From Phallusia mammillata (taxonomy: Eukaryota), in assembly GCA_965637545.1 (NCBI GenBank), contig OZ281494.1:29636001-29700000 (forward strand): a DNA stretch of 64,000 nucleotides. Reading direction: 5' to 3'. Shown here piece by piece: positions 819 to 64,000 of this stretch (the first letter of the stretch is position 1; the number at the start of each line of letters is the position of its first letter). The notes beneath the pieces are model-generated. The model saw only the letters and a list, made by a program, of their open reading frames with translations. It was not told the DNA's origin and searched no databases. The position numbers and the translations under genes are program-made.

Positions 819-3800
819 GTAAAACACAAAGAAGGTCGGGACGTATGTGACGCCGAATTGCGAGTGTTACGTCGAGTCAGGCACGAATACATCGTTCAAC
901 TCATTGAAGTCTTCGAGGTAAGGTTTCATACTTGCTACAACCCTCACCTAGGATGTGTACGTATGTTTATTGATCAATAAAGGAAGTGCTTGGAACGCTA
1001 CTTGCTTCCTGAACAACTTCTGTAACTTATTCGAGAACAAACATTGTTACTCGGTTTAGAGATATGTTGGTTCGTAATAATCAAGGTTATATGTTTTTCT
1101 TATTTATGCAAATGATTTCGTTGTGTTTTTTTGCTGTGTTTAACTTGAACTATTTGAAATTTGTTAATCGGCCGATCAAGGTTGCAAAGGAACAAATGAA
1201 ATAAATGTTTGCCGACTCAGTAAGGGTAAAAACAGGAGAAAATTTTCGAATGTGTTTGATCTAAGCAACATTGACTTTTTAGGAAAAAAAACACAGAAAG
1301 CTTTTTTAAGAAAAAAAAACAGAGCAGTCAAAACGTGTTTGAATCTTTTGTCTTATGTGCAGCTCCAATCGTCTTTGTTTTATGTTGTTTGGGTAGATTT
1401 TAGCACGTACACATACTTAACACTGATCTTATTACATATATATATATCCACAAATCACTTTCAACATATCTCATTTTCAGGGTCCTGACAAGGTTTATAT
1501 GGTGATGCAGTTAGCCACAGGAGGCGAGCTCTTTGACCGAATCATCCAACGCGGCAGTTTTTCTGAACGGGACGCCGTTAAAGTTCTACAGATGATCTTA
1601 GAGGCCGTGAGGTACCTCCATTCGCTCGGCATTACGCACAGAGACTTAAAACCTGAAAACTTGCTTTACTACCATCCTGGAAATGATTCTAAACTTCTGT
1701 TGACCGATTTTGGACTTGCCTCGACCCGGCGTTCGGGCGACGACCCTACTATGACGACAACATGTGGAACGCCAGAATATATTGCCCCGGAGGTAAAAAT
1801 TAGTTTAATTGTTGATTTTAAACCTTATAAAAGTACGTATTTTGTTTTGCGTGTATTTTAGCAGGAACCTGTGTTGGGCCTCTCGCCGACCGCTAAGAAT
1901 CACCTAAATTCATTAAATAAGTTGGTTGACGTTCGAATCCCTAAAATTATGTCGATTTAAAGTGATCATTTAACGCTCAGTTTGGTCGCAGTAATGGGCG
2001 TTTACGTGGGAGAATGTTGGTGTATCAAACTGTGTAGCGTTTAAACCGAATATCCCCCATATGCAATTGAACAATGCCGACTTATAACAGTGTTTTTTAA
2101 CAATCCAGCCACCTAGGATTACCGTATATCACGAAAATCAGTAACCCCGAAAAAAATGAATTTCATTCATAAAAACTCCCTGGTCCCAAAATCATAATTT
2201 ATAAAAACTCCCTGGTCCTAAAATCATAATTCAGTTTTGCGGCATTGAGCTTTTTGCAAAACCTTTACACACTGTTCTATTGTTTTATCAGTAATTTTAG
2301 CGGTCGAAAAGTTTCGAGAAAGTTCAACTGAAATTGATTTATTCTTGTCTATCAACAATCAGCGTCTGTTTTTCGGGAGGTCGACAAAAACACAAAGAAA
2401 TGGCGTCGGCTAAAGTACATCACACTTACAACAGACGCACGCGTGTCAGCAATATTTTCACACCTACAGCTACGAAATCCGACGCCGTTTTATCTGTATC
2501 ATGTGAAACATACGCGGTGGGCCTTACAGCTTAGGTGTTAAACCCCGGATCCGGTAGCAATACAACACACGCCACAGCCATTGTGTGTTCACACCTACGT
2601 AACAATAGACCCTTTGTCACGACAACAATGAAAATATATGCTCGCTTACTGCGAAAGTGTGAGGTTCTTGTAAACGGAATTTTGTATATTTCTATCTAAT
2701 ATCAACTATGTATTATGGCGAATAAATGTCATTCATGCCTTATTGAGCATTATTACTATTTTATATATTTTTCATGCTAGCATTTGTCTAAAAGTGCCCT
2801 TAAAAACACTTAACATTTTATGTTTATCCAGGTTTTACAAAGGAAACCATATACTTGTTCGGTCGATGGTTGGGCTTTAGGAGTCATAACCTATATTCTA
2901 CTCAGTGGTACAATGCCATTCGACGATGAAAATAAGGGAAAGCTATACAGAATGATCATTCGCGGTGACTATACTTTCAATGGAGACGTGAGTACCACTT
3001 GTGATACCCTTAGTTGTATGACATTTCACACAGGAGACGGGAACGTCGGTTTAGAGATGGGTTATGCGAGGTTGTCTAAAATTTCATATGGGATTGAACT
3101 GAACCAACTAACCGTTTCTGCGTTTTTTGGTTTCCCTTTTTTACCAGTATTTGATAAAACCTAAAATGTTATTCAAACTGTTAAAGTTTTCTCAATAAGA
3201 CAGTTGTTTTTTATATAAATTTTTCGGGAAATTCAACTTTAAATGAGCCTTGGGCAAATGTAACAACCTTATAAAGTGGCATTATGAAATTATTAAACGT
3301 TTATTGTTAAAACGTTTTTTACGTAATGCCAAGAAATTAAATTATAAAAGGTTTTGTTTTGCCTTAAACCAAGATTATCATTAATAAAATCAATCCCATA
3401 AGCAGGTTTCACATAACACAGTCAAAACCTCAGCAAAACAACACTTCAAGCCAATCATCATCTACCAGTATGCAAAATTTTTCACAGAATATATTTCTGT
3501 AACAAAGGTTGCTTAAAAAATACCAAATTATAGCCAATACATTCCGGAAAGGTGCTTAATGTCGAAAATATTTCAACCATTGAAACTTTCCGAGCAATTT
3601 GAAGTGGAAAAAATAAAATCGTGACGGATTACGATGCTAAGAACAATAGCCATGAAGCCTTGACTTAAAGTTGAGACGTTGAGCGACGATAAAAAATAAG
3701 CTGACTGATTGCATTCCTGTAGGCCGCGCGCAAGAGCACAAAAGAAACCCGGATTTCAATTTTTACTTGCGTGCTTAATGAGAAAGAAGGCCCGCGGGTT

Positions 3801-19869: not shown

Positions 19870-26662
<6,793 letters not shown>

Positions 26663-28165: not shown

Positions 28166-30324
28166 ATGGCAAATTGGAACAAAGTGGGGGTCGTTTGCGG
28201 TGTCTTTCTTACTAATTTTCTGGTCATTGGCCCTTTTAAGTCTATGGGAGTATACTTTTTGGTATTTCAATTGGATTTGGGTGCTAGTGCTCAGGAAGCT
28301 TCCATGGCATTGTCCATAATGTTTGGAACCTACTTTGCTGTGGGTGAGTGTCTGGATATAATTAGAAACTTGCATAACATATCTGCCTTAATATATAAGC
28401 TATTGCTGCCAAGCATAATATCAAGTTTATGGAGCTCTTCCGGCAATTGTATGTATATATTCCGACGTTTCGACGCCCTATACAGGTGGCCTTCATCAGG
28501 GTAAATAACACTAAATGCGCGTATTACAGTGCACGATATTCATTCGTTATCGCGCAGTGTTTTCGTTGCGTTGTGACGTTATTGCGTTTATTTCTGTTTC
28601 CTTTGTTTATCGTGCACTGTGCTACGCACATTCAGTGTTATTTACCCTGTATAGGACTTCGAAACGTCGGAATAAAAACATACAATTGCCAGAAGAGCTC
28701 TATAAACTTGATATTTGCCTCAAGTAACAATACTAGTCGTGCATGCAGCTGCAGATACAGATTTATGTGGCCACGCACTTGTGTATTAAAATGTTACATT
28801 GGCGGCTTTTTTGCAAGACATTTGTCTTGGTATGGGAAGGTTTTTATACGTATTGAGCGTTACGCTACGTCCGGTGTGAACGGGCCTTAAAGGTAGGCTA
28901 TTACAAGCCAAGTGCACACGCCAGACTTTTTACGCCAGACTTTTTGCGGTCCGATTGTGTGCGTAAAGTGCCAAAATTGTTACTTACAACATACTTTACA
29001 GGTCCATTGGTAACAGTCATGTGTTCATTCTTTGGTTACAAATCGACATGCTTGATCGGCATGACCTTAGCTGCACTTGGAGTATGCTTATCAAGCGCTG
29101 CACCGAGTATTGGATTCATATATGTGACAGTTGGGTTATGTCTTGGTAAGAAAATAAATAGTGGTTTAAAACCTGGCAAATCTGCAACTTTTTGTGTGCT
29201 GCTCTTTTACAGACACTGACAATGTTTTTATGGCTAAATTTGTCTCAAATAAAAGGCGCACAGATTGTAACCTGGAAAAAAATGTTTTCAAACTCGTGGT
29301 AAACTGCAATTGTTAAAATAACCCTTTCGCCTACATTGTGTATAGTCGCATTCTTTCCAAGCGTCATACTAATATTGACTTTTACATCTTTTGTGCAGGT
29401 TCTGGCGCATGTATGGCAGTTACACCAATGTATGCACTTGTGGGCCAACTGTTCACCGACAAACGACCTTTTGTGAACAACATTGTAACCCTAGGTAGTG
29501 CCGTTAGCAGCGTTCCTCTTAACTTACTGGCTCAAATATGGATTGATTCATACGGCTGGAGAGGATCACTGCTTCTAATGGGCGGCGTTGTGCTCAATGC
29601 ACTTCCAGCTATTCTGTTTACTATGAACGCTGCAAGTCGTTGTAATGCAAAACAAAAGGCTGGTCGGCGTAAAGTGTTCGACACGTCTTTGTTAAAGTCC
29701 TGTCCGTTTTTGTTGTATTGTGTAGCCAATGGGTTTTACATAGCAAATATGGTGCTAGTAGCGACTTATTTAATAAGATACGCACAATCACTGGGTATCG
29801 ACAACCTCGCAGCTGCTGGCCTGTCTTCTATAATGGCGGCTGTTGAAATTGTCCTTAGGCCGGTAAGTGGATATATGTCGAGCCTAAAAACTATTTGTTC
29901 ATTTCGTGTCAATAGATCTTACATTTTAGGTGGCGCAGCACTGTTACAGTCTATGTTTCTTTTCACTCTTCCGTTCGTCACTGATTATCTTGGTGTAGCG
30001 ATAGTTGTCGTGGCCTGCTCAGCATGCGTTGGTGCTGCTGGAGCGCTGCCTATTACTGTTCTTTCAGATCTTTTCGGTCCAGAAAAGTTGCCAACATCTT
30101 TGGGCATACGTACTTTTTCAATGGCGGCTCCTCCCTTAGTTGGAATAGCAGTGGACGCAACTGAAATGTTTAGTTTGCCCTTTTTCTTTAGTGCAGGATT
30201 TTCGCTTATAGCAGGCGTGTGTTTTGTCATAGTTGACCTTTGCGTCAAACCTCCAGAAGATAAAGAACAGGTTGTTGTTGAGGCTGAGACTAAACCACAA
30301 GACTCGCACGAAACCAAAACTTAA
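28166..30324 (+). CDS. SLC16/monocarboxylate transporter-like MFS protein, paralog A (415 aa); exons 28166-28343, 29002-29145, 29399-30324
   Basis: 12-TM MFS hydropathy pattern. MCT motifs GPFKSMGVYF, GPLVTVMCSFFGYK, FTDKRPFVNNIVTLGS, YGWRGSLLLMGGVVLN, VFDTSLLK and LSDLFGPEKL. The two phase-1 introns sit where vertebrate SLC16 genes have them. Confidence 0.9.
28417..28715. mobile_element. Foldback (inverted-repeat) element with a Penelope-type minimal hammerhead motif, in intron 1 of MCT paralog A
   Basis: Arms 28417-28538 and 28608-28715 are near-perfect reverse complements. The minus strand at about 28455-28510 reads CC-CUGAUGA-A-GGCC...GUC-GAAAC-GUC-GG. The plus arm lacks 14 nt including most of CUGAUGA. 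Confidence 0.7.
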
Positions 30325-31043
30325 CTTGAATTTCAACTTTGACAGCATGCAATACAAATAGGCTTTCGTGCAGTTATGTATGGTTAAGCATGTTAAATGC
30401 CAAGTTTACTTGTAAAAGTAGTCCATAATATAGCATGGTTTATGTCATTGTTGCGTATTCCAATCATCACTTCGGTAATTCCATTAGACATTAAACTATA
30501 ATGTTGTAAGACATACGATTTTTTTACCATGAGTTTCTATGTACCTACGAAGTCACCAATCTTTTCTGTAAACCTGAAGCGACGTTTCGGCTGCAAAGTA
30601 AGTCGGTTCGGGCTTTTCGGATCAAGTTCGCGCTTAATGCGGGCCCGACTCACACTTATCATTCTTTGTGCTGAAATTGTGTTGACTTCTGGGCCTAATT
30701 CGGGATTGGTCTTTACGACAAATCGTATCCAGGCCAGCAGGTTTCAAACTTGCATAATTGACCCATTGATTGTGCTTTTGTCACGTGTCTGTTCGTAAAA
30801 GGTTCTCAACAGAAAACACTTGCATCCAAAACACAAACTTTTTTTTATTTTTTAAAGCATAAAACTTGTCCGGATTTTTTAACACAGCTGAATTATAAAA
30901 AACACCAATTCAGGCAGCTATTGGGTCATTGACTGTAAAAAAAGCGTTTGTAGTGTTTCAACGAACACAAGCAGTCTGTAATGTAATGTCATTTTGAAGT
31001 CACAAACTCACAACACAGTCTAATGTAGCTCCACCACAGAAAC

Positions 31044-31233
31044 GGTAGAACTACTAACACTAAGCTTGCCTGGGAGTAGGTGGCGCAACAGAGCATAGGC
31101 GTTTATGGTGCTGACTCAGCAATTTGGGTTTATGGTAAGAATGATTGCTGAGTGAGCACCATAAACGCCTATGCTCCGTTGCGCCACCTACCAAACCGGG
31201 CGCAAGCCCAAGCTCAGTGTTAGTAGCTCTACC
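31044..31233. mobile_element. Mutator-like foldback MITE between convergent MCT paralogs A and B
   Basis: Almost the whole 190 bp is an inverted repeat (GGTAGAACTACTAACACT...GTAGGTGGCGCAAC...CAGCAAT and its reverse complement). It is flanked by a perfect 9-bp TSD CACAGAAAC. Confidence 0.8.
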
Positions 31234-31885
31234 CACAGAAACAGTACACCACATAGGAGCCATAGGAAAAAGTCTGGGATGTTTACCTGCAAACTAAAGT
31301 AAAAGGACAGAGCATAATCTTGCAGTGACAATTAGGAGTGACTCGTTCACGGCACAATTGATACTAAAATCTCATTTGGCCTTTTTGATGAAAGGTCAGA
31401 TCTGTAGATTTTGATTTGATTTTCAGAGGCCATTTATAGCGTATTTCTTTTCAAAATGGCAAGTCACTCGAGATGGTGAAACAAAAAATGTACTACACAC
31501 ATCTTCATTAAAATATAAGGTCTTGAAATTAATTTGAAGCAAAACTAAAACATATAAAAATAATAACATGACAATATTCTATTTCAATTGAGACTGTAAT
31601 AATGTGTTGAAGTCTATAGGCCAAGCTGCCAAGTTTGCAAAATCTACGAAATTTCCCTTTTGTATGCACTCCTGCCGCTGTCTTTGTATGATTTAAAATG
31701 AAAACTGAGGTTTGTACGATTGTTAGCATACTGCAATTTATTATTGTAGACCCTATGAGGAAAAGAATTAAAGTAAAAAAATAAACAACAAAAAATAAAC
31801 TTGGAAAGTGATTTGGAGCTAAACATCCACTGAAACTAAAACAAAAAATATATTGCGCAACAGTTTACAATAAACATTTACATTT

Positions 31886-33324
31886 TTAAGTTTTTGCTTC
31901 GTTTGACTCAATTACTTTTGTGTCAGAGTCGATCACGTCAGGTTTTCTGTCTTCTCGACTGCCCACACACAAATAAACCACGACAAAAAACACTGCAGCC
32001 ATGCACGATAAACTTGCAGCTAAGAAGAACGGTAAACTAAACGACCCAGTTGCATCCACTGCTATTCCAATTAGCGGTGGAGACGCCATTGAAAACGCTC
32101 CTATTACAAACGATCGTACACCCAAAGATGTTAGCAAATTTTCAGTGCCAAAAAGATCCGACAAAACGGTAATGGGCATTGCTCCTGAAATACCTAAACT
32201 TGCGGCGTAGACCACAACAACAACCACTACGCCAAGATAGTCGGTGGCAAAAGGAAGAGTAAAAACAGCAGTAGCCTGAATGACAAGAGTGACACTTAAA
32301 ATGTAAGATCTGTTGACAGGAAAAGGCCCAATAGTTTTGAGACTAACCATATAACCGCCCAAGGGCGAAAGAGCCATTGCAACTGCACCGATGATAGAAA
32401 TCAGTCCAGCTGCTGCGATGCTTTCGATTCCTTGCGATTGTGCATATCGTGTTAGGTAGGTGTTCACCAATACGATACTTGCGATGTACATACTACTGGC
32501 CAAACAATACAACAAGAATGAAAATGACCTCAATAAAGACGTGTCAAAAACTTTACGTTGAGACGTTGTTTCTTTCACGTTGCAGTGTTTTGCACCATTC
32601 ATCGTAAACAGAATAACTGGAAGTGTGTTAAGCACTGCGCCACCCATCAAAAGTAGCGAACCACGCCAGCCGTATGAATCAATCCATATTTGTGCAAGCA
32701 AGTTTAGAGGTATGCTGCTAACTGCGCTACCCAATGCTATGATGTTGTTTGCCAAAGGTCGTTTGTCGGAGAAAATCTGCCCGACAAGAGCAAACATTGT
32801 CGTGACCGCCATGCAGGAACCTGCACCTAAAACAAACAAAATTACTTAGTCAGTTGCTTAGCAGTAGTTTCATGAACAGTTTACTTACCCAGACATACCC
32901 CTAATGTCACGTACGTAAACTCAATGCTAGAAGAAATACTTGACAAACATACTCCAAGCGTTGCAATAACAGTGCCAATCAAACATGTCCATTTGTAGCC
33001 AAATACACAACACATTACAGATACCAAAGGACCTGAAACACGCGTACATAGTTGAACAATGTGATCCTCTGACATAACAAACGAATCTACAACGTTATAT
33101 GCTAAAAGAATAAGATCGTTTTTGTTAGTCTGCATATATCACTTACCAGTAAAAAAGTAAGTTCCGTACATTATCGAAATCACCATTGAAGCTTGTTTGG
33201 CGCTGGCGGCCAAATCCAGTTGAAACACCAAAAAGTAAACACCAAAAGCTTTCATTGGGCCTCCAATAAAGAAGTTGGTCAGAAAAGCCCCACAAGCAAC
33301 TTGTACCTTACACCATTTGGTCAT
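31886..33324 (-). CDS. SLC16/MCT-like paralog B (420 aa); exons 33324-33147, 33032-32889, 32826-31886
   Basis: Same 178/144-nt first exons and MCT motifs as paralog A (FSDKRPLANN, YGWRGSLLLMGG, LSDLFGTENL). Open frame, GT-AG junctions. Confidence 0.9.
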
Positions 33325-34130
33325 TGTTATTTCCACTGTAAACTTTGTCGTGCAGACAAAATATTCCAGTCAATTGAAGCTATGAAAAATCACAGCAATT
33401 ACACAATACAGAAATCTCGTGGAAGGCCAGAATAATGTTTATTGACGTTGATCCCAGCAAAAAGCCTTTTTCGCGTGTTGCTGCTGTGTCGTTTGCTTGC
33501 CTACTTCAAGACAGCAGTCAGCTGTGACAATCGCTGTGTTGCAAAACAACGGCAAGAACACAAACAGAATCGCAAGACTGTCTTGTAGTGCTCCCATGCA
33601 TTGTTATGAAACATTTAGGCAATTTAATAATAATTTTACCATTTACCGGGACTTCTCGGTGAGTAAATACGCGCCTCTATCATAAAGTATTCATAAAAAA
33701 CGTTGATAAAGTTTGTAAACCTGTAGAAGTGTCTAAAATGTCTCTGCCAGACCACTCTTGGGCAATATCCTGCCCTGCGGCCCAATCGTTGTGTGTGGTG
33801 CACTTTTTCTGTACAGTTTAATTTTCCTTAGCCTAATTAAATACCTCTTTCCAATGCTTGTCGTGTTTTTGTCCTAATACGCGAAATACAGTATTCGCCC
33901 TTCGCAAGCTGCATTAACGCTTTAGGCTCAAATACGGGTTTCCAACCAACATATAATTATTATAGTTAATATACGTCCTAGCGTCAAAGGATTGTATGTG
34001 GTTGCATTAAGAAATGTAATTGGATTATACGAAGTGTAAATGCAAAAGCTACAGTCGTTTTTACGCCTTTTTCATTGCGTTTGAACATGATTACAAAAAT
34101 GTAAGTTCAAAGTATAAGCTTTTAACAGTA

Positions 34131-34969
34131 GGGGAGATGCAGGACCATTGGGTCAAAATTCAGTTTTTCATGACTATTTCTTTGAGTTCGAAAGAAAAAT
34201 TGCCATTGAACACCTGTACTAATACTACATGTTTTAACACACTTACACAAGGGCATAACTTTCTTATTTGGAAATGCGTTGGCAAGATATTCCGTTTTAA
34301 AAATTGCAAAAAATATGGCTCAAAGGTCCTTACCCTTGGGGACCATTGAGCCTCGCATAAAGGACCTTTGGGCCAGTATTTTCATGTGATATTCTGGACC
34401 ATTAAACCACGCATGAGGGATCTTATTAAGTGTTGTGTTTGAAAGTAGAACAATTTTATTGAAAAAGAAATCTAATATTAATCCAAAAAAAATACAACCA
34501 GCATCAATAGCTTTATAGGCCAAGGACCTTTGGGCCATGCCCAATGGTGTAAAGTCAAAGGGCCATGCCCAATGGTCCTGTGAACAACTGGCTCAATGGT
34601 CCTGTATTGCCGCCATTACGAACTTATCTTACTGAACTACGTTACACAAATTAACTTAAGAAATACTAATGCTCATCTAACGCTACAATCAACTAACTAA
34701 TATCCTGCAAACTTCGTGTTTTAACTAGCTTTCTCTCATAAAGAAATTACAAAAATGTAAAGGAGCAAAATATTTACTTTCAAGCTGCGAAAACTTAGTT
34801 ATGCTCACAGTTTCTTCTGTAAGTGACTGACCTTCTTGTTGTTACAGCTTTAAAACTATTGCAACACAAGTACTTTAACACATGACTGAGAACTCGCTAC
34901 AGCAACCAGTTTGAGAGAAACGCATGATGGCCCAAAGGTCCTTCATGCCCAATGGTCCCGCATCTCCCC
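34131..34969. mobile_element. TA-flanked non-autonomous DNA transposon (Tc1/mariner-pogo-like MITE)
   Basis: TIRs GGGGAGATGCAGGACCATTGGG / CCCAATGGTCCCGCATCTCCCC with TA on both sides. Internal repeats AAGGACCTTTGGG and CCCAATGGTCC. Confidence 0.75.
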
Positions 34970-35222
34970 TATTATACCGGCTTTTAAATCGTGGTTCTAA
35001 AAGCAAATTAATGCGAAAAGAAAAAGAAAATGTCCAGTTTGCAATCACTAATGGGTTTATGTGTCGTCACTTCATCTTTCTATGCTTAACTGTAAGGGGG
35101 ATTTAGATTTATTATGACAGATGTTGTTTATTAGCCAATTAACTGACGAAGACATATTACAGATGTCACATCATGAATTCAATACTTGACAGACATAATC
35201 ATAGCGTTGCAATAGTTGTACT

Positions 35223-36964
35223 CATAGGCGCCGAGTTTTACAAAAATGCAAGGTGGCGGACCTAAATTATGACGTCACTTTTTGTGAAGCACTAATGCGT
35301 GCAACCACACGAGCTTCAACTCAAAGCGCAATAAACTTTCAAAAGAATGCAACGTTCGTCAAATTCTTTAAAAAAAATATTTTTTAAACTAATGTTCATT
35401 TGAAACACTTTGCTTTAACGTTATTATTGGTTTGGCAACGTTCAGAGAATGTTCCGACAAGTTGTTGCTCTTGTATCACCTAAAATAACCATTTATTACA
35501 GTAAAATCGCATTTTACACAATAATAGCCATACATTCACTGACAACAATTGTGTGTTTGACGTCATTAACAAAGCACTGACCAAAACAGGTTGCAGTTTC
35601 GACACGTTTTGTTGCTGTCATGCCAGCATGCTTGTTTAAAAGCAAAATTGTTCCCAAATTTCTTTAGATTTTACGATGTTTCGTACGATACCGCTACAAA
35701 TAAACCAAAATATTCACTTGCTTACAAACCCAAGGTGGCGGCTCCACCCCGCCACCGCCCACTCGAGGCGGACATGCGAGCGTTTTTTGCACATTGTGTT
35801 CGAAAATGTGCAGGTCAAAATGTGCGCACATTTTTTGAAAATGTGCAGATGGCAAAATGTGCAGGTGCCAAATTGTGCAGGTCAAAATGTGCGCACATTT
35901 TTTGAAAATGTGCAGGTGCCAAAATGTGCAGGTCAAAATGTGCGCACATTTTTTGAAAATGTGCAGGTGCCAAAATGTGCAGGTCAAAATGTGCAGGTGC
36001 CAAAATGTGCAGGTCAAAATGTGCGCACATTTTTTTGAAAATGTGCAGATCAAAATGTGCAGATGCTAAAATGTGCAGATGCCAAAATGTGCAGGTCAAA
36101 ATGTGCAGTCGCTCAAATGAAGTATTGATATTTAACGTCAAACTATGTACAGTGTTAAGGCACTTACATAAATGTTTTATTAGTGTTGTGGTTATGAATT
36201 GTGCCAAAAATATTAGTTATAACCTATAAATTAAAATCGGATTTATAAGAAACTTGTAAAAATGCATATTGTTTTTGTTAAATATGGCAAAGCATGAAAT
36301 AATCCAACATTCAGGATATAAGAAACACTGTTTTTCAGACTAGATATGTACATGATCGTCACCTCAAATGGTTTGACTTTATTGTTTTCAATTTAACGCC
36401 TGTTAGCCTGTAGCCTGCTTTATCAGAGTTACTGCAACTGCAAAAAGTTGATAACAAAAGAAACGAGAGGAGAAGAGGAGCTGGACTACCATATGAGTAT
36501 ACTGTGATTAAACTCAAAACCAAGTCAAAGACCCAGCTATCCAGTGATTTTTATTCAATGAAATCAAATGAATTATTAGAAAGTTTTCCATCCTTGGGGT
36601 TCTACTGCACAATTGACAAAAGGACTTTGTGTCTTTGGAAGAAACTCAAATGACAACCTTCAAAAAGAAAAGGACAACCACACAGTTGCACAGCAATCTT
36701 CCTAATGTTTGACATTTTTTATTTGTTTGAGGCTCATTTACGTGACATAACTTGGTATATAGGTATTTAATTAGGTTAGTTTTGAAACCCACACAAATAC
36801 TTGATGTGATGCCCTAATTTGAAGTTTGCTAAAACATTCATGTTATTGCTTCTGACTTGCTATAGTGTGCACCAGATAGGCTAGAAAGACCTACGACCTG
36901 CACATTTTGGCGCACATTGTGCAAATTTTTGCCGTAAGCCCTGTTGGGCCACTCGGCGCCTATG
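35223..36964. mobile_element. 1.74-kb non-autonomous hAT-like element containing a minisatellite
   Basis: Perfect 13-bp TIRs CATAGGCGCCGAG / CTCGGCGCCTATG and a perfect 8-bp TSD GTTGTACT. No transposase ORF was recognised. Confidence 0.88.
35803..36108. repeat. Minisatellite of about 19 AAAATGTGC-based units (14/16/21 bp), four being the palindrome AAAATGTGCGCACATTTT
   Basis: Direct reading. The higher-order unit AAAATGTGCAGGTGCC-AAAATGTGCAGGTC-AAAATGTGCGCACATTTTTTG (51 bp) recurs. Confidence 0.95.
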
Positions 36965-36976
36965 GTTGTACTGATC

Positions 36977-37283
36977 TAGGGATGTGCCAAAACTGCAAAT
37001 GTTCTTGGTCGAGCACCGAGCATTAAAGTGAAATGCCGAGCACGCTCGGTGCATTATGACGTCACAAAAAATCCCCTTTCTACGTTTTAGCTCTACAAGG
37101 TCTCTTACGTCACCGGCGGTGTTTTATTTAGCTGTCATGCCCTTTAAGTACGCGTTTTTCCACTATCTAATACATTTGAAAAATCATTCGTTTTTGTTCA
37201 AAGACACCCTTTAGAACACTAGTTTCGTATGTTAGCAGGGCATGAATATGCAAATTTAACGCTCGGGTCAGTTTGTGCAACTG
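36977..37283. mobile_element. Truncated second copy of the 22427-22824 hAT MITE
   Basis: It begins TAGGGATGTGCCAAAA and is colinear with 22427-22743. The right TIR is missing. Confidence 0.85.
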
Positions 37284-37934
37284 AAAAACAAAGTAGGCAA
37301 CACACTCGAAGGACTCAGTGGGGCCTAAAAGAAATGTTATACAAAAGTCGCCGATAAATGACTTACTCCATTTTATCATAGTTTTTCACAAATTAAATAT
37401 TTTACGTTATGTATACAATACAACGATAAAAACTACAGAAAAAATACAAGCCGAAATAATGTGAGATATGTTAAGCTTAACGACCTTTTTAACGTAATTT
37501 GCGATTTGATTACCTTTAAAGGCAGCAACTATTGTGTTGCCCGGCAAAGCTGTTTAAAACACGTTGAAATGAAGTAGGTGCGTTGAAAAGGTTAGCCTAT
37601 CAGAGTTGTAAGTTAAGCGGGCATTTCGGGTCGGGTAGGGGTTCGGACCTGACTTTACACTTGATGTCATCTTTGCCGCATCCTTACCATCTTTGGGGCT
37701 AAAGGAGGGCTTTGTTTAGACCGGGATTGTGGCTTGTACTTTCGGATTTGTGCCGGGTAAAGGCTGTGGCATACATTTAGAAATATTGAACTAAACTAAA
37801 TTGTACCACTGTTTAAAAACAAACGAAAAAAGGAATACGAAAGGGAAATTTATGCAAAAAGTACCAAAGCAAATAAGTACATGTTAGAAATAAGACAAAC
37901 TTAGTTTCCCATGCACGTGCGGCTCCATTTCTTT

Positions 37935-40181
37935 TCATTCAACTTCTACCACAGCAGGCAGTAAGTCTTGTAAAGGGCTCACACACAAATAAACAACAAC
38001 AAAACACACACCGGACATGAATGATAAAATGGCAGAAAAGAAAAATGGATAACTAAACGAATCACTTGCGTCCACTGCTATTCCAATTAACGGGGGTGAT
38101 GCCAATGAAACAGCACCTATCAAAAAAGAACGCATACCCAAAGATGTTAGCAAATTTTCTGTGCCAAAAAGATCTGAGAGAACGGTAATGGGCATTGCTC
38201 CTGCAATTCCTGAGCTTGCTGCGTAAATAACTACAACAATTACTACACCAAGATAGTCGGTGGCGAACGGAAGAATAAAAGCAGTAGCAGATTGTATAAA
38301 AAGTGTGGCACTTAAAATATAGGATCTGTTTACGTGGAAGGACCCAATAGTTTTAAGACTAACCACATAACCGCCTAAGGGCGTCAGAGCAATTGAAACA
38401 GCACCGATGATTGAAACCAATCCAGCTGCTGCGATGCTGTCGATACCTTGCGATTGTGCGTACCGTGTTAGGTAAGTATACACTACTACTGAACTAGCAA
38501 CGTACATACTACAGGCTAAACAATATAACATAAAAGGAAAAGATTTCAGCAGAGAAGTGTCAAACATTTTTTGTCGAGTGGATTTTTGTTCCGCATTGCA
38601 ACGACTTGCTCCATTGAAAGTAAACAGAATAGCTGGAAGTGTATTAAGTGCAAAACCACCCATAAGAAGTAGTGATCCACGCCAACCGTATAAATCAATC
38701 CATATTTGTGCAAGCAAGTTGAGAGGGATACTGCTAACTGCGCTACCTAAAGTTAGGATGTTATTCACCAATGGTCGCTCGTCAGAGAACAATTGTCCCA
38801 CAAGAGCAAACATTGTTGTTACCACCATGCAGCAACCTGCACCTAAAACAAAACCAACCATGTTAGAGCAGCGGTTCCCAACCTATGGGTCGCCTGAAAA
38901 TTCTGTTGGGTGGCATGTTTTGTGACAATAAGACCATCTACTTGTTAACTTCGTTTCGTAGCGTCATCTTTTATTTCCTCAGACTTTAAATTGTTACCGG
39001 ATAATGGTTTCATGACAACTTGGCGTAATAATGGTTAATTGTATTTGTGCCGTTATAAGATATGTTTTAGCTCGCTGTTGAGGACTATCTGGCTGATAAT
39101 GCTTTAAATCAGGTTTGAAGTTTGGGCTAAATGGAAATGTTTGGTGAAAAAAAAACGTGTAATATTGGTTAGATTTTTCAAACTGGTGTAGTATTTTTTT
39201 TAAAAAACTTTCCTCACAGAAATACAACCAAAAAAGTAAGAATGCATGTCCATGGGTCACGAGAGACCACAAAACAAAATTTTGGACAGTATTTGGGTCG
39301 CGTCAAAAAAGGTTGGGGACCATTGCGTTAGAGTCTATTCTTCTATCAGTAAGTTTTGTATTTATTAAGTTGTGATATTATGTTTAACAACTTGTACACG
39401 AGCAATAACGACAGCTTGTTATTTTTCTGTCATTGTTATTTTAACTCCTACTTAAGGGAAATGCGTTTTACAACCATATTCGGATAATGTATACTTTATA
39501 AAGACACTTTCTAAACACAACTAGATCAGTGTATCAAAGACATGGTTGTTTTACTTACCAAGACATACCCCTAATGTCAAGTATGTAAACCCAATGCTTG
39601 TAGAAATACTTGACAAACATACTCCAAGCGTTGCAATAACAGTGCCGATCAAACATGTCCATTTGTAACCAAATATTGAACACATCACAGTTACCAACGG
39701 ACCTGCAACACGCGTACATGGTTGAACAATGTGATCCTCTGACATAACACCAGTGGTGAGATTCAGTCGGTTCGCGCCGGTTCTAAAGAACGGTCTCACG
39801 AAATTTAATGAGATCAACAAACCGGTTAGCATTACTGGTTATACTGTCAATGGTCTTTTTAACAGAACCGCATGACTTTTGTGATAAAACCGGCTGAGAA
39901 AAAAATTGAATCCCACCACTGCATAACACTCAAAGTTGCAATGCTATGATACTTTGTGAACAATGTTATTTTCGTTATTTCGTACACTAAACAGACCACT
40001 TACCAGTAAAGAAATAAGTTCCGTACAGTATCGAAATCACCATTGAAGCTTCCTGAGCGCTGGCATTCAAATCTAATTGAAACACTAAAAAGTAAACACC
40101 TAAAGACTGCATAGGGCCACCAATAAAGAAATTTGTCAGAAAAGCCCCACAAGCAACTTGCACCTTACTCCATTTTGTCAT
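37935..40181 (-). CDS. SLC16/MCT-like paralog C (409 aa); exons 40181-40004, 39702-39559, 38842-37935
   Basis: Same exon sizes (178/144) and motifs. Closest to paralog B, including shared intron sequence. Confidence 0.9.
38869..39325. mobile_element. hAT (Buster-like) MITE in intron 2 of MCT paralog C
   Basis: Ends CAGCGGTTCCCAACC / GGTTGGGGACCATTG. TSD TGTTAGAG / CGTTAGAG. Confidence 0.8.
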
Positions 40182-40408
40182 TGTTTTTTTCTCAAACTAT
40201 TTAACTTATCATATTGAAACGTTACAGCTGTGAAAATTTATAAAAGCAGTATTGAGCAGAAATCAAATACTCAAAGTCGTTTACGAGATGTTTGTTCTAA
40301 CCAACCGACCGTGCTGTTGCGTTTGCTTACCCACTTTGACGCAACAGCCAGTAACCCTCGATCCTTTGCAAAGAAGTTTAATACTGTATGTGTACACAAT
40401 GTTAAGAC

Positions 40409-40858
40409 TGGAGATGTACCGAATATTCGGTTTGCCGAAATATTTGGCCGTATCGGCTATTTTTGCAAAAATTTTAATCTTTTACAAAAACAAATTTAAA
40501 GCGTTAAATGTGTTTTTTGGCGTAGTAAGTAACCTCTTTCAGACTTCACCACAACGAAAATCGATTCAACTTTTATATTTTTCAACACATTATCGTTTTT
40601 ACCACTGTAGACGAAAAATCAGTAATTCATTGGCAGGTTGCCAATCGTGCTTGAGGCAATTTTAAACCCCGCAGAACTGAAATAAGGACGTAACACAACT
40701 AGTGTGCACTAATTGCTTGGTTGATAAACATTTTTTCACGTCACACGCGTAGCGTATACGACTTCGCGTGACGTCATAAATATTTCGGTTGATTCGGCAA
40801 ATCCGCCGAATATTCGGCTTCGGCCCAATCGAAATTTAGCCGATGCGGTACATCACTA
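40409..40858. mobile_element. hAT MITE upstream of MCT paralog C
   Basis: Ends TGGAGATGTACCG / CGGTACATCACTA, perfect TSD GTTAAGAC, and subterminal CCGAATATTCGG repeats. Confidence 0.85.
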
Positions 40859-41133
40859 GTTAAGACTGCTTCGCCTAGCTTCTTTGCATTAAAGTTCCAA
40901 GACCTGAATCATTATATTAGCATAGTCTTTTGCCTGGATGTAAATACATTGTCGTAACCAGAGGTGTGTATGTGTAGAATAGAGTGGACATATACAACAT
41001 GTTGGTTTATGTTTAGTACTTTATTATGCCCAATTATAAGTTTTCAGGTGCAGACGAAGATTGGAATCACCTTCACCGAAAAGCACACTACCCAACAAAC
41101 GATGTTAGTACTTTGTACCAACGTAGTCTATAC

Positions 41134-41365
41134 CAGTGGTCGGCAACCGCCAGGCCGCGGCTCAGTGCCGGTCCGCGGCAAGTTCTTTACCGGGCCGTAA
41201 ACTTTTTCAGGTTAAATGTTTTTAAATATTTTGCCCGTGCACCCAGAGATGTTAAACTAATTTAGGCGTTTTCAGTGCTGAACACTTAGTTTTTTGAAGG
41301 CCGGTCCATGAATAAATTTTAGGTTTACAACCGGTCTGCAGTGCAAAAAAGGTTGCCGACCCCTG
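41134..41365. mobile_element. hAT (Charlie/Buster-like) MITE
   Basis: Ends CAGTGGTCGGCAACC / GGTTGCCGACCCCTG and a perfect TSD GTCTATAC. Confidence 0.88.
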
Positions 41366-42031
41366 GTCTATACAGACATTGGTCACGTATGTGGAACATC
41401 ACGACGATAGGTGACGTGTATTGTAATGAAGACATCGTCTGTGAATGGCTGTTGGGAAGAAGAAATATACAGAAGTTGTATATTGTTGCCAATGAAAAAA
41501 AAATTCAAAAAGATTGTAAGAATTGCACATTTTATTTGCAATAGGAAATACAAAGTACATGAATTGGTCAAATGTTGCACTTTATATTAAAAACACGACA
41601 AAATATAATCGTTTCGTGTGACATTGTACAAACAGACACAATGCACAAATAAGTGTAATAGGACTTTCACTGCAAAACAGCTGCTAGGCGTAAAATTAAA
41701 CATAAAAACACACGTAATTTATGATGGTTGGGCAAGATTGGCATTAAAAAATGTCGAGCTCATTATGAACGCCTTTAAATTGTAAGAATGTTGACAGGTA
41801 TAGCACCAATAAACGACTCTATGGAGCTGTAGCTTGCCTTATCGTTAAAAATAATTACGATTGCAGACGCAAGTCGCACATAGTATATCAAACGGTTCGA
41901 TTTTCATAAAGTAAAATGAAATAGTACAACGTTGTAACCGTAAGTGAGTGACGCATAAATAGTGTCTGCATATTGAAGCAAAAAAGAAAATGTGTTTTGA
42001 AATAATTTGTATTTTGAAAATAGGAAATTAA

Positions 42032-43626
42032 TTATGTTTTCGTTTCGTTTGACTCCATTACTCTTGTTACGGCTTCAACTAAATCAGGTTTCTTATCTTT
42101 TGAAGGATTCACACAAAGATAAACTATGACAAAACATACGCCAGCTATGCACGACAAACAAGCACTAAAGAAAAATGGGAAACTAAAAGTTTCGTATGCG
42201 TCCACTGCTATTCCTACTAACGGTGGAGACGCCATTGAAAAAGCGCCCACCACAAGAGAACGTATACCTAAAGATGTTGGCAACTTTGCTGGACCAAAAA
42301 GATCCGAAAGAACGGTAATAGGCAGTGCTCCACAAAGGCCTATACTGGCAGCGTACGCCACGACAACAATCACTATTCCAAAATAGTTTGTGGCAAACGG
42401 AAGTGATAGAACAGCAGTAGACTGTATCACAGCTGCGACGCCCATAACGTAAGATCTATTAACTTGTAAAGATCCCATCGTTTTGAGACTGACCACATAG
42501 CCAACCAATGGTTTAAGAACTATATCTACAGCCCCGATAATTGAAGATAGCCCAGCAGCTGCTATGCTGTCGATACCTTGTGATTGTGCGTATCGTATTA
42601 GATAGGTCGATACTAACACCATACTTGCCATATGCAGCCCACAGGCTGCACAATACAACAAAAATGGACAGGACTTGAGTAACGAAGTGTCAAAAATTGT
42701 GCGCCGATCAGCTTTTTGTTTTGCATTACAGCGTTTGGCACCATTCATAGTAAACAGAATAACTGGGAGCGCATTAAGTACAAAACCACCCATAAGAAGC
42801 AGCGAACCACGCCAGCCGTATGAATCAATCCATATTTGTGCGAGCAAGTTGAGTGGTATGCTGCTAACTGCGCTACCTAAAGTTACGATGTTGTTCACCA
42901 AAGGTCGCTTATCAGAGAAAATCTGACCCACAAGTGCATACATAGGGGTGATGGCCATGCAGGAACCAGAGCCTGAAAAAAGCAACATGTCAGCTGTTCA
43001 TACACATTCTGTTGGTTGAGAACTTAAAATGTCACAAAATGGTTAGCTGGGATAGTTGTTGCTACAGCCCAATGCAAATAATTGTTTGCAAACACTGTGT
43101 ACCAGCTGTTTGGCAAGTTGTTACCAATAAATCATTTACTTACCGAGGCATATTCCCACAGTCACATATATGAATTCAATACTAGGCGAAACGCATGATA
43201 AGCATAATCCAAGCGTAGCGATGGCCATGCCAATAAAGCAGGTTGACTTGTAACCGAAGAATGAACACATCACAGTTACAATGGGATCTGTAATGCACAT
43301 TGTACGTGTGGTTAACCATTTCTAAAACCTGCCGTAACTGCAGCTACGGTGCTGAACTTTGTCAACAATTGTTTTGTGTAAATGACAACACTGCAAATTA
43401 GACACATTCTTTACAAAACTTCATGTTCAACCTTGGTTAAGCACTTACCAGTAAAAAAGTAGGTTCCGTACATTATCGACAATACCATGGAAGCTTCCTT
43501 TGCGCTAGCCTCCAAAGCTAATTGAAACACCAAAAAGTATACTCCCATTGACTTCATGGGACCCATCATCAGAAAATTTACCAGAAAGGCCCCACAGACC
43601 ACCTGCACCTTGCTCCATTTTGCCAT
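42032..43626 (-). CDS. SLC16/MCT-like paralog D (420 aa); exons 43626-43449, 43287-43144, 42972-42032
   Basis: Same exon sizes and motifs. TM8 reads IIGAVDIVLKP. Closest to paralog A. Confidence 0.9.
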
Positions 43627-44959: not shown

Positions 44960-46485
44960 ATGATGAACATCACAAGATGGAAGAAGGTTCAGGCCGTTTG
45001 CTTGGCCTTTGTACTCGATTTTTTGCTATTGGTCCTGTGAGGGCGATGGGAGTGTACTTTTTGGTGTTTCAAATAGCTTTGGATGCCAGAGCGCTACGTA
45101 TTGTAATTTGCAACCATGCATATAAAATATATTTCACGTTCCTTGATAACTGTGATGCGTTCGTAGCTTGGTTATATTTGCCTAATCGGCGTTGCTATTG
45201 CAGTATTGCTACACTTGGAGTGTTGCTATCGAGCGTTTCACCGAATACTAAATTGATTTACGTTTTGTTGGGAGTTTGTCTTGGTAAGTCAATGTTATTT
45301 TATTTACTGTTGACTAAAGCTGCAAACCTTCAGCACAACAAAGAATTGCTAAGTAATGCGTTTCAATCTATCAACCGGTCGACTAACTACTTGACTGTCG
45401 CGCAATACTATGAACTCCATCAAAATCTGAGATGAACATGTCGTTAAGAATGGGTAAGTGATCAAAATTGTTATGTTACTTTAGTGACAATTTTTCAGGT
45501 CCAGGTGGAAGTATGATTATCACACCTATCTTTGCCCTTTTTGGTTATTCATTCTCGGATAAGCGACCCTTGGTGAACAACATAGTAACATCAGGTAGCC
45601 CGGTCAGTGGTATTCTACTCAACTTGCTGGCACAAATATGGATTGATTCATACCGCTGGCGTGGATCGCTGCTTCTGATGGAAGGCGTTGTGCTTAATGC
45701 ACGTCCACGTTATTCTGTTTACTATGAACGCAGCAAGTCACTGTAACACAAAACAAAAATCAACTTGGCGTAAAGTTTTTGACGTTTCTTTACTCAAGTC
45801 CTGTCCGTTTGTTGTTTTGTATAACCTGTGGTATGCAAATTGCAAATATAGTTTTAGTTAGTGATGCACCGAAACATTTCGACCGAATCCGCTGTTTTTT
45901 GATGTTTCGGTTTCGGCCCGAACTTTTTTGAAAATTCGGCCGAAACCGAACTTTTTGATTGCTTGGAATTTTTGCCTAAAATTTCATTTTCTCCAATACG
46001 AAACGTCATAAATTAACTAATTTTTTCTGTCTACAAAATAGGCTACGAGCCACGTTGTCTGCAAAATACTACAAGTTTAGTATAGCTCCTGCATTGTGAA
46101 ACTGATTTTGATTTGTCATAATTCAATTCACTCGCATCAACGACACAAAGTTCAGTTGAAAATATCCATAGAAACGAGGATTTTAGGTTCGGCCGAAATT
46201 ATTCGGCCTCGTGGACGAATATTCGGTTTCGGCCCGAACTTTTTTAGACGGGTTCGGTGCACCACTAGTTTTAATGTCTACTTTTCTCATACGATACGCG
46301 TAGGCTAATCACAAGGCATCGACAGCATGGCAGCAGCTGGACGATCGTAAAATCATTGGTGCTGTTGACATTTGCCTTAAAACTATTGGTTCCTTCCATG
46401 TAAATAGATCGTATTAGCTACAGGCTTGTCATGCATGACTGGCATGTGTTTTGTCTTCGTTTATTACTTCAGAAGACAAGGACCC
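44960..46485 (+). pseudogene. SLC16/MCT-like pseudogene (paralog E)
   Basis: Exon-1 remnant (RWKKVQAVCLAF..frameshift..IGPVRAMGVYFLVFQIALDA) has lost its 3' end. Exon-2 remnant ends 45283 with GTAAGT. Exon 3 from 45499 (FSDKRPLVNNIV...WRGSLLLMEG) has further frameshifts and stops. A hAT MITE is inserted at 45859-46267. Downstream remnants (GAVDICLK, CFVFV) show large deletions. Confidence 0.85.
45859..46267. mobile_element. hAT MITE inserted into exon 3 of the MCT pseudogene
   Basis: TIRs TAGTGATGCACCGAA / TTCGGTGCACCACTA. TSD GTTTTAGT / GTTTTAAT. MCT coding homology resumes right after the element. Confidence 0.88.
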
Positions 46486-47255
46486 TGATGTGGCTAACGC
46501 CGAGTCCAAAGTAGTAACCGCAAACGAAATGAAAAGTTCTTTTGGACATTTATTATTAAAACACATCGTAATACGCTGCCATGTTTCACTTTTTAGGTGA
46601 TTTTCATTTGATGATGTTTCATACAAAGTGTTCTGGGCTATAATATCTTTGTTGGTAAAAACTTGCCATATTTGATCTCCAGAACGTGTCGTTACAATGT
46701 AAGCAAACATTGTATTTGGTTGCGAAGCCAAGAAACGCATCATAGTAATTCTTGTAATGAAACAGAAGTTACGTGGCAAAATATGTGCTGATTTCTAGAT
46801 CTTTCGCAGGATCGCCGACAGAGTCTTACCCTTCAAGTTCCATGTAGGCTGGTACCCCTTTTTAATAATCGGTCATTTTAAACCAATACTGTAGCCTATT
46901 ATGTAACTTGGCTACATTACAATGTTTATTGTATGCCTTATTACATTTAACTAATTGTAAAACCAAAGTTTTGTTGAATTGCTGTCTAAAAGATGTAAGT
47001 TAATGTGAGTAAAGATGAACATAGCGCCTTCAATGGGCCTGGCGTACTGTGATTTAATGTGAGTAAGTTTTACTTAGAGAAGATTGGTTCGTTAATTAGT
47101 TGCTTTAATTTAAACAACATTTTTCATGTGGATTGTCGACGAGTACATATCGATCGATGATCACGTGATGTTTATTTGTACAAAATCGTTACACGCACAG
47201 CTTCTTCCTAACAAAATATACAAAAATCACAGTTTTTCACTGCTTCCAAGAAGGT

Positions 47256-61490
<14,235 letters not shown>

Positions 61491-62808
61491 CTGAATACAA
61501 CAAAAAACAAAATATGTGAAGGAGAATCTAAACATCTAATTCTAAGGTAACCTAGACTGGAAAGTCAAACAATTAAAAACTACTTCATTAAGTTTTAACT
61601 TCAATTTAACTAAAATAGACAAAAAGCTGCAAGACTTTGGGTCTTTTTGTCGCATGCAAAAAAAGAAGTTTCAAAATTCTTTCTTAAAAAAAAACTTGCG
61701 ACTAAAATACATGTAGGCCGACACAGTGAAAAAAATATTGTCAAAAATCATCTAGAATAAGCACTTTTTTACTTTGCGAACTACAAATACCCCATATTAT
61801 TATGGCATAATTCAATTATCAAATTGATCACGAAAGTCATGTCTGCAAAAGTCATTCGCATTACTTAACAATACCGTCTTGATTTTAAGGTCCCTGGTTT
61901 ACAGTTCTCACGCTTACGTATAATTACAGGCACCTCGAGGCTCTAAATATTTGATAACAATGCATAAAAACCACTTACAATGTGTACCGTGAACAAAACA
62001 ACTGTTTGTGTCAATAATTAATAACCCAAGTGGTGGACAAGAGATGCCATTGTAAGGGTTTTCAAACATACGAGCGTCTTATTTGACATGTCAGTGATTC
62101 CTTATTAGTTTTAGATGCCAACATTGACCAAACTTAAGACAAACGTCATTAAAAGCGCAAGCTAGTATAGAGTTATTGCTAGTACAGTTGCTCTGAAAAT
62201 CTAGAAAACTATAGATTTTGACTTTGGCGGTGTGCAAAAGTGATTTTGTTACACTTTTAAACGCAAGGTAAAGGTTCGTTACAATAGATTCACCTGTCAC
62301 TTTTAAATATGTTTAATACAAAGTATGAAATAAATTCGTAAAAAAAGATTGAAGATATCAGATCTTTATATGACTTCATAACGCTGTAGTTTTGTGTCCA
62401 AATTTGCGAACAAAGCATCGAATCAATCTTGCAAGGTTGCGCTTAAACTTGCACATGTAACCTGTCATTCATGTCAATCAAAATGTGTTCCTCAATATTT
62501 CCCGTAAGCGGTTGGCCACTAAGCCAATGATCGAACTTCAACATTTCTGATTTAAAGGCGTTTGAACTTTGCCATGGGCAGCAGAAAAGCTTAATGGAAT
62601 TGATTTATGCCTCAGGCAAAACGTTTGATCTAAGTATCAAAATATTTCAGCAGAATGCAAGGTAGCACCCTTAGGCCAGCAAACTAGCGAACTGATCATG
62701 TAGAATAATACTGGATATACGGTCCACAATTATCATGCTGATTTTAAGGTCATTGGCTGAGATTGTGTATTTTCAGGCATTTTGTTTCTTTGGTGTAGGT
62801 AAATAAAT

Positions 62809-63799
62809 ATGGACGATTACGAAAACCTGACAAACTGCAATGTTCTGCACTCGTTTCGTCTCTGTTCAAAGGAGTCGTTTTTCTCACGAAATTATTCGTT
62901 CAATGCGAACAGGTTAGTTGCCCTAAAACACTTTAATTCAGGTACATTGAACTGGCTACTTCTGTTTGGATAATAGTAGCAGACCTATTTTGCAACTCGA
63001 TTTAAACATCTGCTTCAAAATTGTGAATTAAACAACATGCAGATGTACACAGTAGACCCCGTTTGACAATATGCCATTGTTCTTCCACAGTTAAAACACT
63101 GTAGTAGTTTCAAAATTAACCACAACTGAATGTATTGTTTCGTCGAATTCCCTATTTACACCCTTTACAACATGTATACAGAGACTGCAGTGTACCAGGC
63201 GTTCTATTCAATCTGATATCAACCATCATAGTCAGCATTATCACCGTTCTAGGGAATCTCCTTATACCAGCGGTAATATGGAGACAGAGACGTACACAGT
63301 GGGGTCCGTACGGTCTTTGCAAGCTGTGGTTGTCAGTCCTTGACATTATCATGGGAGTTTTTTACATGCCGATTCGTGTGATGATGATGGTAGAGGTGCT
63401 GTATATCCCAAGCTCACATGACAAGAAGGTTGTTTTGAAAGCAGCTAAAGGTAAGATAGGGTGATGTTTGAAACTCTGGATTGAAAAGGCACATCAAAAT
63501 TCTAACTCATTCAATTTTGCACATCCTTAATTATGGCTAATCAAAGTACATGGTACAAGGCAAACCATTCTGTAATGCTTACATTAAACCGGTTGTTTAC
63601 AGATCTAGCTCATATCTACAACCATCAACAACACGTTTTTGGCAGTAAAGTTGAACAGATTCACAACTTTACATATTATCTGCACCCGAGTAACGGAAGT
63701 GGTCCCTACAATCTACAAATGTTGTTTAAAATGTACGAGGTCACAAATCGACCGTTAGTTACCACTATGAGTTGTTTGCTGTCTACCTATATTCTATTG
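62809..63799 (+). CDS. Class A (rhodopsin-like) GPCR, 3'-partial, nested antisense in a NALCN intron; exons 62809-62912, 63182-63450, 63603-63799
   Basis: N-terminus MDDYENLT..NYS carries N-glycosylation sequons. TM1 IIVSIITVLGNLLIPAVIW (GN motif), TM2 LWLSVLDIIMGVFYMP (LxxxD motif), a long loop, then TM3-like TTMSCLLSTYILL ending at a GTAAGT donor. Phases 2 and 1 are consistent. The DRY motif is not in the window. Confidence 0.75.
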
Positions 63800-64000
63800 G
63801 TAAGTCAATGTGCTTTGTGGTGTGGTAGGGCTATGTAAAGGTTTATTGTCCAGTTCTAGAATATATGTATTTTCCTGTTCGATTTTTTTCTTTACTGTTC
63901 GCATAACAATTTCGACAGTGCTGATGTATATAAAGGTCGCCTCGACATAAACTATTTAGAACAAAGGTGCAATTAACAACCCTTAAACACTCAAGGCACA

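Follow-up and report, generated by a model that had tools for sequence, protein, structure and literature searches.

Phallusia mammillata carries a tandem array of transporter genes within the 64,000-nucleotide window analysed here (assembly GCA_965637545.1, contig OZ281494.1, positions 29,636,001 to 29,700,000, forward strand), a stretch of about 38% GC with zero N. Between 28.1 and 46.5 kb of the window, one gene is present in four intact copies, here called paralogs A to D, together with a pseudogene, E, and a relic of exon 1 from a sixth copy. All four intact copies consist of three exons that join in phase 1 at canonical splice sites (G followed by GTRAGT at the donor, YAG at the acceptor), and their backbones are approximately 70–75% identical to one another. 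The original prediction, made from the sequence alone, described the array as SLC16 transporters in which the residues that couple protons to substrate have diverged between paralogs, and proposed that B and C have acquired a new function.

Searches with the genes of the window were made exon by exon, with single exons as queries. Exon 3 of all four copies passes the Pfam profile PF07690 (MFS_1, major facilitator superfamily) with 76–88 bits against a cut-off of 33.4, the E-values being 2e-23 for A, 1.3e-21 for B, 2.6e-21 for C and 5.8e-25 for D. When exon 3 of D was compared with the PDB using phmmer, the matches were solely human and mouse MCT1 and human MCT2 (E 1e-22 to 1e-24; MCT, monocarboxylate transporter), while exon 1 alone gave no match in the PDB. 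The ortholog from Clavelina lepadiformis (P0002) matched MCT2 and MCT1 (E 1e-39 to 1e-30), followed by MCT10 and MCT8 (E 1e-16 to 1e-18) and the bacterial SfMCT. This ortholog also stood in for the window's own proteins in fold modelling: its AlphaFold2 model has a predicted local distance difference test score (pLDDT) of 93.3 and a predicted template modelling score (pTM) of 0.91, and the top 12 Foldseek matches to it are all human MCT1, 2, 8 or 10, with TM-scores of 0.75–0.91. Human MCT1 and MCT2 (SLC16A1 and SLC16A7) are the closest solved sequences, reaching TM-scores of up to 0.86–0.91 for the ortholog model. The array shares with them the fold of 12 transmembrane helices (TM1 to TM12) and a near-identical TM8 framework, S-I-x-x-x-V-[D]-x-x-x-[R]-P.

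The SLC16 family signature in TM4-5 is YFxK[RK][RL]xLAx[GA]xAxAG. The corresponding stretch of the array, [IL]F[ST]D[KE]RP[LF][VA]NN, keeps this signature in part, aligning with YFYKRRPLANG of MCT1: R143, P144, L145 and N147 are matched, within a K-R-P-L-x-N motif shared with MCT1 and MCT2. A second signature, [D/E]G[G/S][W/F][G/A]W, leads into TM1 at the N-terminus of SLC16 proteins and serves as a guide to the family, not as a curated rule. No array copy carries it: the proteins begin about nine residues before TM1 with M-[AT]-[KN]-W-x-K-V (e.g. MAKWSKVQV) and lack the DGGWGW motif, as do the Ciona and Clavelina orthologs. The genes are thus best named SLC16-like, as a divergent tunicate subfamily. 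They also differ from MCT1 and MCT2 in having only about 23–26% identity, a very short N-terminus, a TM6-7 loop of about 23 amino acids (aa) as opposed to about 62 aa in MCT1, hardly any C-terminal tail, and a Thr at the position aligned with E376 of MCT1. The compact architecture put forward in the original prediction, with proteins of 409–420 aa, no PDGGWGW leader and a short TM6-7 loop, is therefore accurate. It is a property of the tunicate subfamily and not of the array alone, since the orthologs share it: the Ciona intestinalis protein P0003 ('monocarboxylate transporter 4-like'), its neighbouring paralog and Clavelina P0002 ('monocarboxylate transporter 6-like') are 407–414 aa long, 49–56% identical to exon 3 of D, and in Ciona encoded by the same three-exon layout. 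Judged by these matches, the array consists of a compact SLC16/MCT-like major-facilitator gene with close relatives so far in tunicates only, and it warns against taking the NCBI names 'MCT4-like' and 'MCT6-like' at face value for tunicate proteins.

Three charged residues, K38 in TM1 and D309 and R313 in TM8, are essential in MCT1-4 (PMC8980330). In MCT1 they are required for substrate binding, the proton relay and the conformational switch, and neutral mutants of K38 function solely at acid pH (PMC9982067). The HMMER alignment of D (AVDIVLKP) on MCT1 (FVDMVARP) is gap-free and of high confidence across TM8, placing D/K of paralog D on D309/R313, and the four paralogs align without gaps to one another in this helix, where the register is not in doubt. 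The TM1 lysine was mapped by way of the GPMK of P0002, which falls on the K38 position of MCT2, and from there through the exon-1 alignment. The states at K38 and D309/R313 read by eye in the original prediction hold in these alignments: K and E/R in A, K and D/K in D, K and A/S in B, Q and S/T in C, and R and D/K in pseudogene E (Table 1). The K/D/R triad is thus absent from the array, none of A to D has the D/R pair of TM8 that is typical of MCT1-4, and by this residue signature none of them is to be filed under the MCT1-4 proton-coupled type. TM8 of both B and C contains zero charged residues from the Glu/Asp of the preceding loop to the following Lys. No compensating charge was found in the predicted transmembrane helices of B or C, with helices taken from the ortholog model; at charged helix columns on the pathway their differences are losses only (K to Q, D to A/S, R/K to S/T), and a further charge loss, K to N, sits in the TM10-11 loop. 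Further replacements common to B and C fall on columns that are conserved in the other sequences: P to T and Y to F in TM5, G to S and H to Y in TM7, and L to M in TM10, where the changed residue adjoins the positions aligned with F367 and S371 of MCT1.

Table 1. Features of the window, with the codons of the residues aligned to MCT1 K38, D309 and R313 (window coordinates)
Feature	Position	Strand	Details
Paralog A	28166..30324	+	exons 28166-28343, 29002-29145, 29399-30324; 415 aa
Paralog A residues	K25 AAG 28238-28240; TM8 E257 GAA 29845-29847, R261 AGG 29857-29859	+	
Paralog A deletion	~30070-30090	+	exon 3, in TM11; 5 residues, in frame
Paralog B	31886..33324	-	exons 33324-33147, 33032-32889, 32826-31886; 420 aa
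Paralog B residues	K25 AAA 33250-33252; TM8 A257 GCA 32378-32380, S261 TCG 32366-32368	-	
Minisatellite	35803-36108		B-C intergenic; compound
Exon-1 relic, sixth copy	37278..37385	-	tblastn E 3.9e-4; ~550 bp downstream of gene C stop
Paralog C	37935..40181	-	exons 40181-40004, 39702-39559, 38842-37935; 409 aa
Paralog C residues	Q25 CAG 40107-40109; TM8 S257 TCA 38394-38396, T261 ACG 38382-38384	-	
Paralog D	42032..43626	-	exons 43626-43449, 43287-43144, 42972-42032; 420 aa
Paralog D residues	K25 AAG 43552-43554; TM8 D257 GAT 42524-42526, K261 AAA 42512-42514	-	
Pseudogene E	~44969-46465	+	tblastn; head-to-head with D; fragments of all three exons
Protein-kinase exons	1499-3164	+	left end of window
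Ion_trans exon	53906-54298	-	within ~47000-64000

The original prediction had proposed a phylogeny as a check. In the tree built for the closest clade, A to D form one group (support 97/96), and B and C form a robust subclade within it (100/99), as had been foreseen. The sister of the array is P0001, a three-exon gene on a genomic contig from another species (98/95), followed by P0004/P0005 (95/93). All three carry D/K, and the two Ciona proteins and the Clavelina protein, all with D/R, lie outside these D/K groups. P0001 was considered as an ortholog of D and rejected, as it falls outside the four-copy clade and its synonymous divergence (dS) from the array is saturated. Because the sister lineages of the array carry D/K, D keeps the ancestral state. 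On this topology, Arg was replaced by Lys in TM8 once, before the array arose, and the array ancestor had a TM1 Lys and a TM8 Asp/Lys, already one step from the Asp/Arg of MCT1-4, Ciona and Clavelina. D retained this combination, as did pseudogene E in its TM8; in A, both members of the TM8 pair were substituted (D to E, K to R); and the B/C ancestor swapped the pair for small uncharged residues, so that both charges were lost on the B/C stem. After the split, B and C each altered one of the two TM8 positions again, giving the present Ala/Ser and Ser/Thr, and C afterwards changed its TM1 Lys to Gln. The codons allow single-step paths for these changes (GAN to GCA to TCA, and AAG or AGG to ACG to TCG), with GCA and TCA, and likewise TCG and ACG, one step apart.

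The duplications that gave rise to the array are old, as indicated by a dS of 0.67 between B and C and of 0.8–1.1 for the other pairs. Clavelina has one gene at its locus. Ciona intestinalis has a second copy on the minus strand, at 20148-21583 of locus L014 from AP043569.1. It lies some 10 kb away from the first copy, is convergent with it and 65% identical, and likewise has K and D/R. The two Ciona copies are sisters (100/99-100), and hence the product of an independent duplication. The Ciona pair and the single Clavelina gene thus differ from the four-to-six-copy array both in copy number and in having the canonical residues, and the tandem expansion is, on this phylogenetic evidence, lineage-specific. 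No further close copies were found elsewhere in the genome of P. mammillata, where the only other SLC16/MFS genes detected are about 26% identical and lie on another chromosome. Chance similarity is not an issue, given that the array paralogs match each other in tblastn searches at E 1e-136 to 1e-151 and that position 313 is basic in all 14 of the other members of the clade.

Selection was examined with our own maximum-likelihood codon models, fitted to 393 whole codons from five taxa; codons were taken from each exon separately, and those split by an intron were left out. The pairwise ratio of nonsynonymous to synonymous divergence (dN/dS) is 0.18–0.21 for every pair in the array (0.215 for B and C), and the free-ratio model gave omega values of 0.21 for A, 0.19 for B, 0.27 for C, 0.15 for D and 0.19 for the B/C stem. 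Departures from consensus at the 80 exon-3 columns that are conserved in 11 non-array relatives number 4 in D, the slowest-evolving copy, 11 in A, 12 in B and 11 in C. Constraint on B and C is thus on a par with that on A, a strong argument against decay, and the similar long-term purifying selection on all four copies suggests that B and C still work as membrane proteins. By inference, a frame of 410 codons drifting neutrally over such a distance would hold many stops, as E does.

Since a claim that the loss in B and C is lineage-specific and unusual depends on absence, the word-index searches, which had returned 3 and then 7 relatives, were supplemented with an exhaustive HMMER profile search. 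It recovered 1354 proteins at E<=1e-10, and residues were counted in 163 aligned domains from the 150 best cluster representatives. Position 313 is R in 146 of these domains, K in 6 and another residue in 11 (approximately 7%), while position 309 is D in 90, N in 52 and S in 12. Among the 14 other sequences of the immediate clade, 313 is always R or K, and 309 is D save for one S and one N. At the K38 position, 29 of 48 aligned N-termini have K or R, the rest being mostly aromatic. Loss of the acid is therefore common in SLC16, and loss of the base, by these counts, is rare yet repeated and not unique to B and C. SLC16-like proteins without the TM8 Arg include Ciona 'MCT13-like' XP_078494085.1 and its Phallusia homolog LOC100182912 (S/S), annelid proteins with S/Q and N/Q, and a fish 'MCT12-B-like' protein with D/N. 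They resemble B and C in an independent loss of the base, sometimes of both charges, but are distant and long (489–699 aa) and belong to other SLC16 branches; no substrate was found for them, and hence they offer no functional guide. The LOC100182912-type gene (P0071) lies at C8:13056925-13064271 on the minus strand of the P. mammillata genome, and constitutes a second, unrelated loss of the TM8 charge pair in the same genome. Over its clean exons, the P. mammillata protein P0071 is 92–98% identical to this genome.

Precedent for proton-independent members of the family is provided by MCT8 and MCT10 (SLC16A2 and SLC16A10) and MCT7 (SLC16A6), which have lost proton-coupling residues. MCT7 lacks D309 and carries taurine in a pH-independent manner (PMC8980330). 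MCT8 has N and S at the K38 and D309 positions, reminiscent of Q and S in paralog C, and retains the Arg for the carboxylate of its ligand; this TM8 Arg is described as the carboxylate sensor that is conserved throughout the family (PMC12078798). MCT7, MCT8 and MCT10 all keep it, unlike B and C, and they are much longer than the array proteins and not close relatives. The TM8 pair, and in C also the Lys, is lost and no replacement charge is present, so that B and C are most likely not proton-coupled monocarboxylate carriers. We consider it fairly probable, from the residues and the constraint on both genes, that both are functional carriers which no longer co-transport a monocarboxylate with a proton; they would then move some other solute, probably a non-anionic one, or work as uncoupled facilitators. 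A narrower version, in which selectively kept SLC16-type carriers with a fully uncharged pathway, the TM8 acid and base, and in C the TM1 Lys, being gone, would move a non-anionic solute by uncoupled facilitated diffusion, is offered only tentatively. The functional shift postulated in the original prediction is thus supported in part: the charges are lost, uncompensated and lost from constrained proteins, which makes a change of substrate or coupling plausible; its adaptive component found no signature. Gene models, residues, the direction of their changes, constraint and lack of compensation are shown here, and the altered substrate or coupling is inferred from them. The use of A and D as lactate/H+ references, also part of that prediction, does not stand. 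Neither has D/R. In rat MCT1 the conservative R306K substitution abolishes activity although the mutant still gets to the membrane (PMC2409183), so that MCT1-like behaviour cannot be taken for granted even in D, which is not a safe lactate/H+ control.

Several results weigh against a change of function in B and C. At only about 23–26% identity to MCT1 and MCT2, the roles of the residues may not transfer. The D/K pair that the subclade stably keeps does not support activity in MCT1 (PMC2409183), and the role of the pair may therefore already have differed before B and C lost it. The word-index searches found no near-identical or B/C-like proteins, and in particular no near-identical transcript-derived protein, although records of this genome may be missing from the collection searched. 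Lastly, branch tests and the branch-site tests that had been suggested revealed no acceleration or positive selection in B and C, although their power is low, since they cover only five taxa and the outgroup is saturated. With the saturated outgroup branch in a class of its own, omega is 0.211 for the B/C clade and 0.198 for A/D (p=0.77), and the 0.176 of the B/C stem does not differ from the rest (p=0.52). The branch-site likelihood-ratio statistic is 0.62 for the stem (p=0.43), 0 for the clade and 2.37 for branch A, none of them significant, and the TM8 positions are absent from the sites with top posteriors. An apparent omega effect for the B/C clade (p~0.002) arose from the saturated outgroup branch and was dropped.

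The main rival to changed transport is that function is the same in all copies, the TM8 pair having become dispensable once Arg was replaced by Lys in the subclade, with both positions drifting in A, B and C. Indeed, P0001, P0004, P0005, D and E stably carry the ancestral D/K although R306K kills MCT1 (PMC2409183), the pair has changed in three of the four lineages and at both positions again after the B/C split (A versus S, S versus T), 309 also varies (S, N) among other close relatives, and B and C show no shift in omega. Against this, 313 is basic in 14 of 14 other clade members and is R or K in 152 of the 163 nearest-relative domains. Furthermore, the pair in A is still a charged one (E/R), with no drift towards neutral residues, and the further changes shared by B and C at conserved TM5, TM7 and TM10 columns accompany the loss. 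We regard this explanation as rather unlikely, and favour altered substrate or coupling in B and C over it.

It is decidedly improbable that B and C are silent, decaying or non-transporting, as unexpressed duplicates, subunits or receptors. The residues that they have lost are held essential in MCT1 (PMC9982067, PMC2409183), the array is prone to gene death, as exemplified by E and the exon-1 relic, the C-terminal tail of C is about 11 residues shorter as a result of a TGA stop, and the lack of a transcript-derived match in the word-index searches would fit a silent gene. Still, frames of 409–420 codons have stayed open with canonical splice sites after a B-C dS of 0.67, omega is 0.19–0.27, which we count as no higher than for A, and B and C keep the consensus at approximately 85% of the conserved columns, the same as A. 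Strict adaptive neofunctionalisation, the stronger form of the original prediction, with positive selection behind the pocket changes of the B/C stem, is likewise improbable and stands unsupported. The shared replacements at conserved TM5, TM7, TM8 and TM10 columns speak for it; against it are a stem omega of 0.176–0.21, not different from background, the null branch-site results for stem and clade, and the absence of the TM8 positions from the top-posterior sites. Given these results, 'neofunctionalisation' stays a reading of the residues.

If B and C transport, the array would be a natural SLC16 experiment, with paralogs that differ at carboxylate-binding and proton-relay residues and with canonical orthologs at hand in Ciona and Clavelina. 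Should their pathway indeed be uncharged, the series D/K, E/R, A/S and S/T would serve to dissect how substrate class and coupling depend on the charge triad. That coupling residues diverge between SLC16 paralogs is a known kind of event, of which the array is a new example with value as a natural mutant series; otherwise it is a usual case of birth and death of genes in a transporter family and opens no long-standing question.

Pseudogene E is real, but it lies beyond the 28166-43626 interval that the original prediction gave for the array. It contains frameshifts, in-frame stops and internal deletions, with one TGA and three TAA within the exon-3 match in a search of the own genome. The stretch after TM8 is gone and the C-terminal half is missing. 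The exon-1 relic has decayed to M.KWSK...GP..S...YFVFQL, and no exon 2 or exon 3 remnants were found near it by tblastn (36300-37935). Paralog A, the fastest-evolving live copy, has a deletion in TM11 (GIRT directly followed by FSMA, as opposed to GIRSxxxGAFSMA in all relatives), and its own function may be altered as well. No Rfam family reached the gathering threshold between 27000 and 47000. The compound minisatellite between B and C has periods of 16, 30, 51, 67 and 82, with the unit AAAATGTGCAGGT..., and gives rise to spurious repetitive open reading frames on both strands. The genes flanking the array in the window, which include the protein-kinase and Ion_trans exons, match neither the Ciona neighbours (MDM1, Sushi/VWA) nor those in Clavelina (P450), and the local synteny is thus not conserved.

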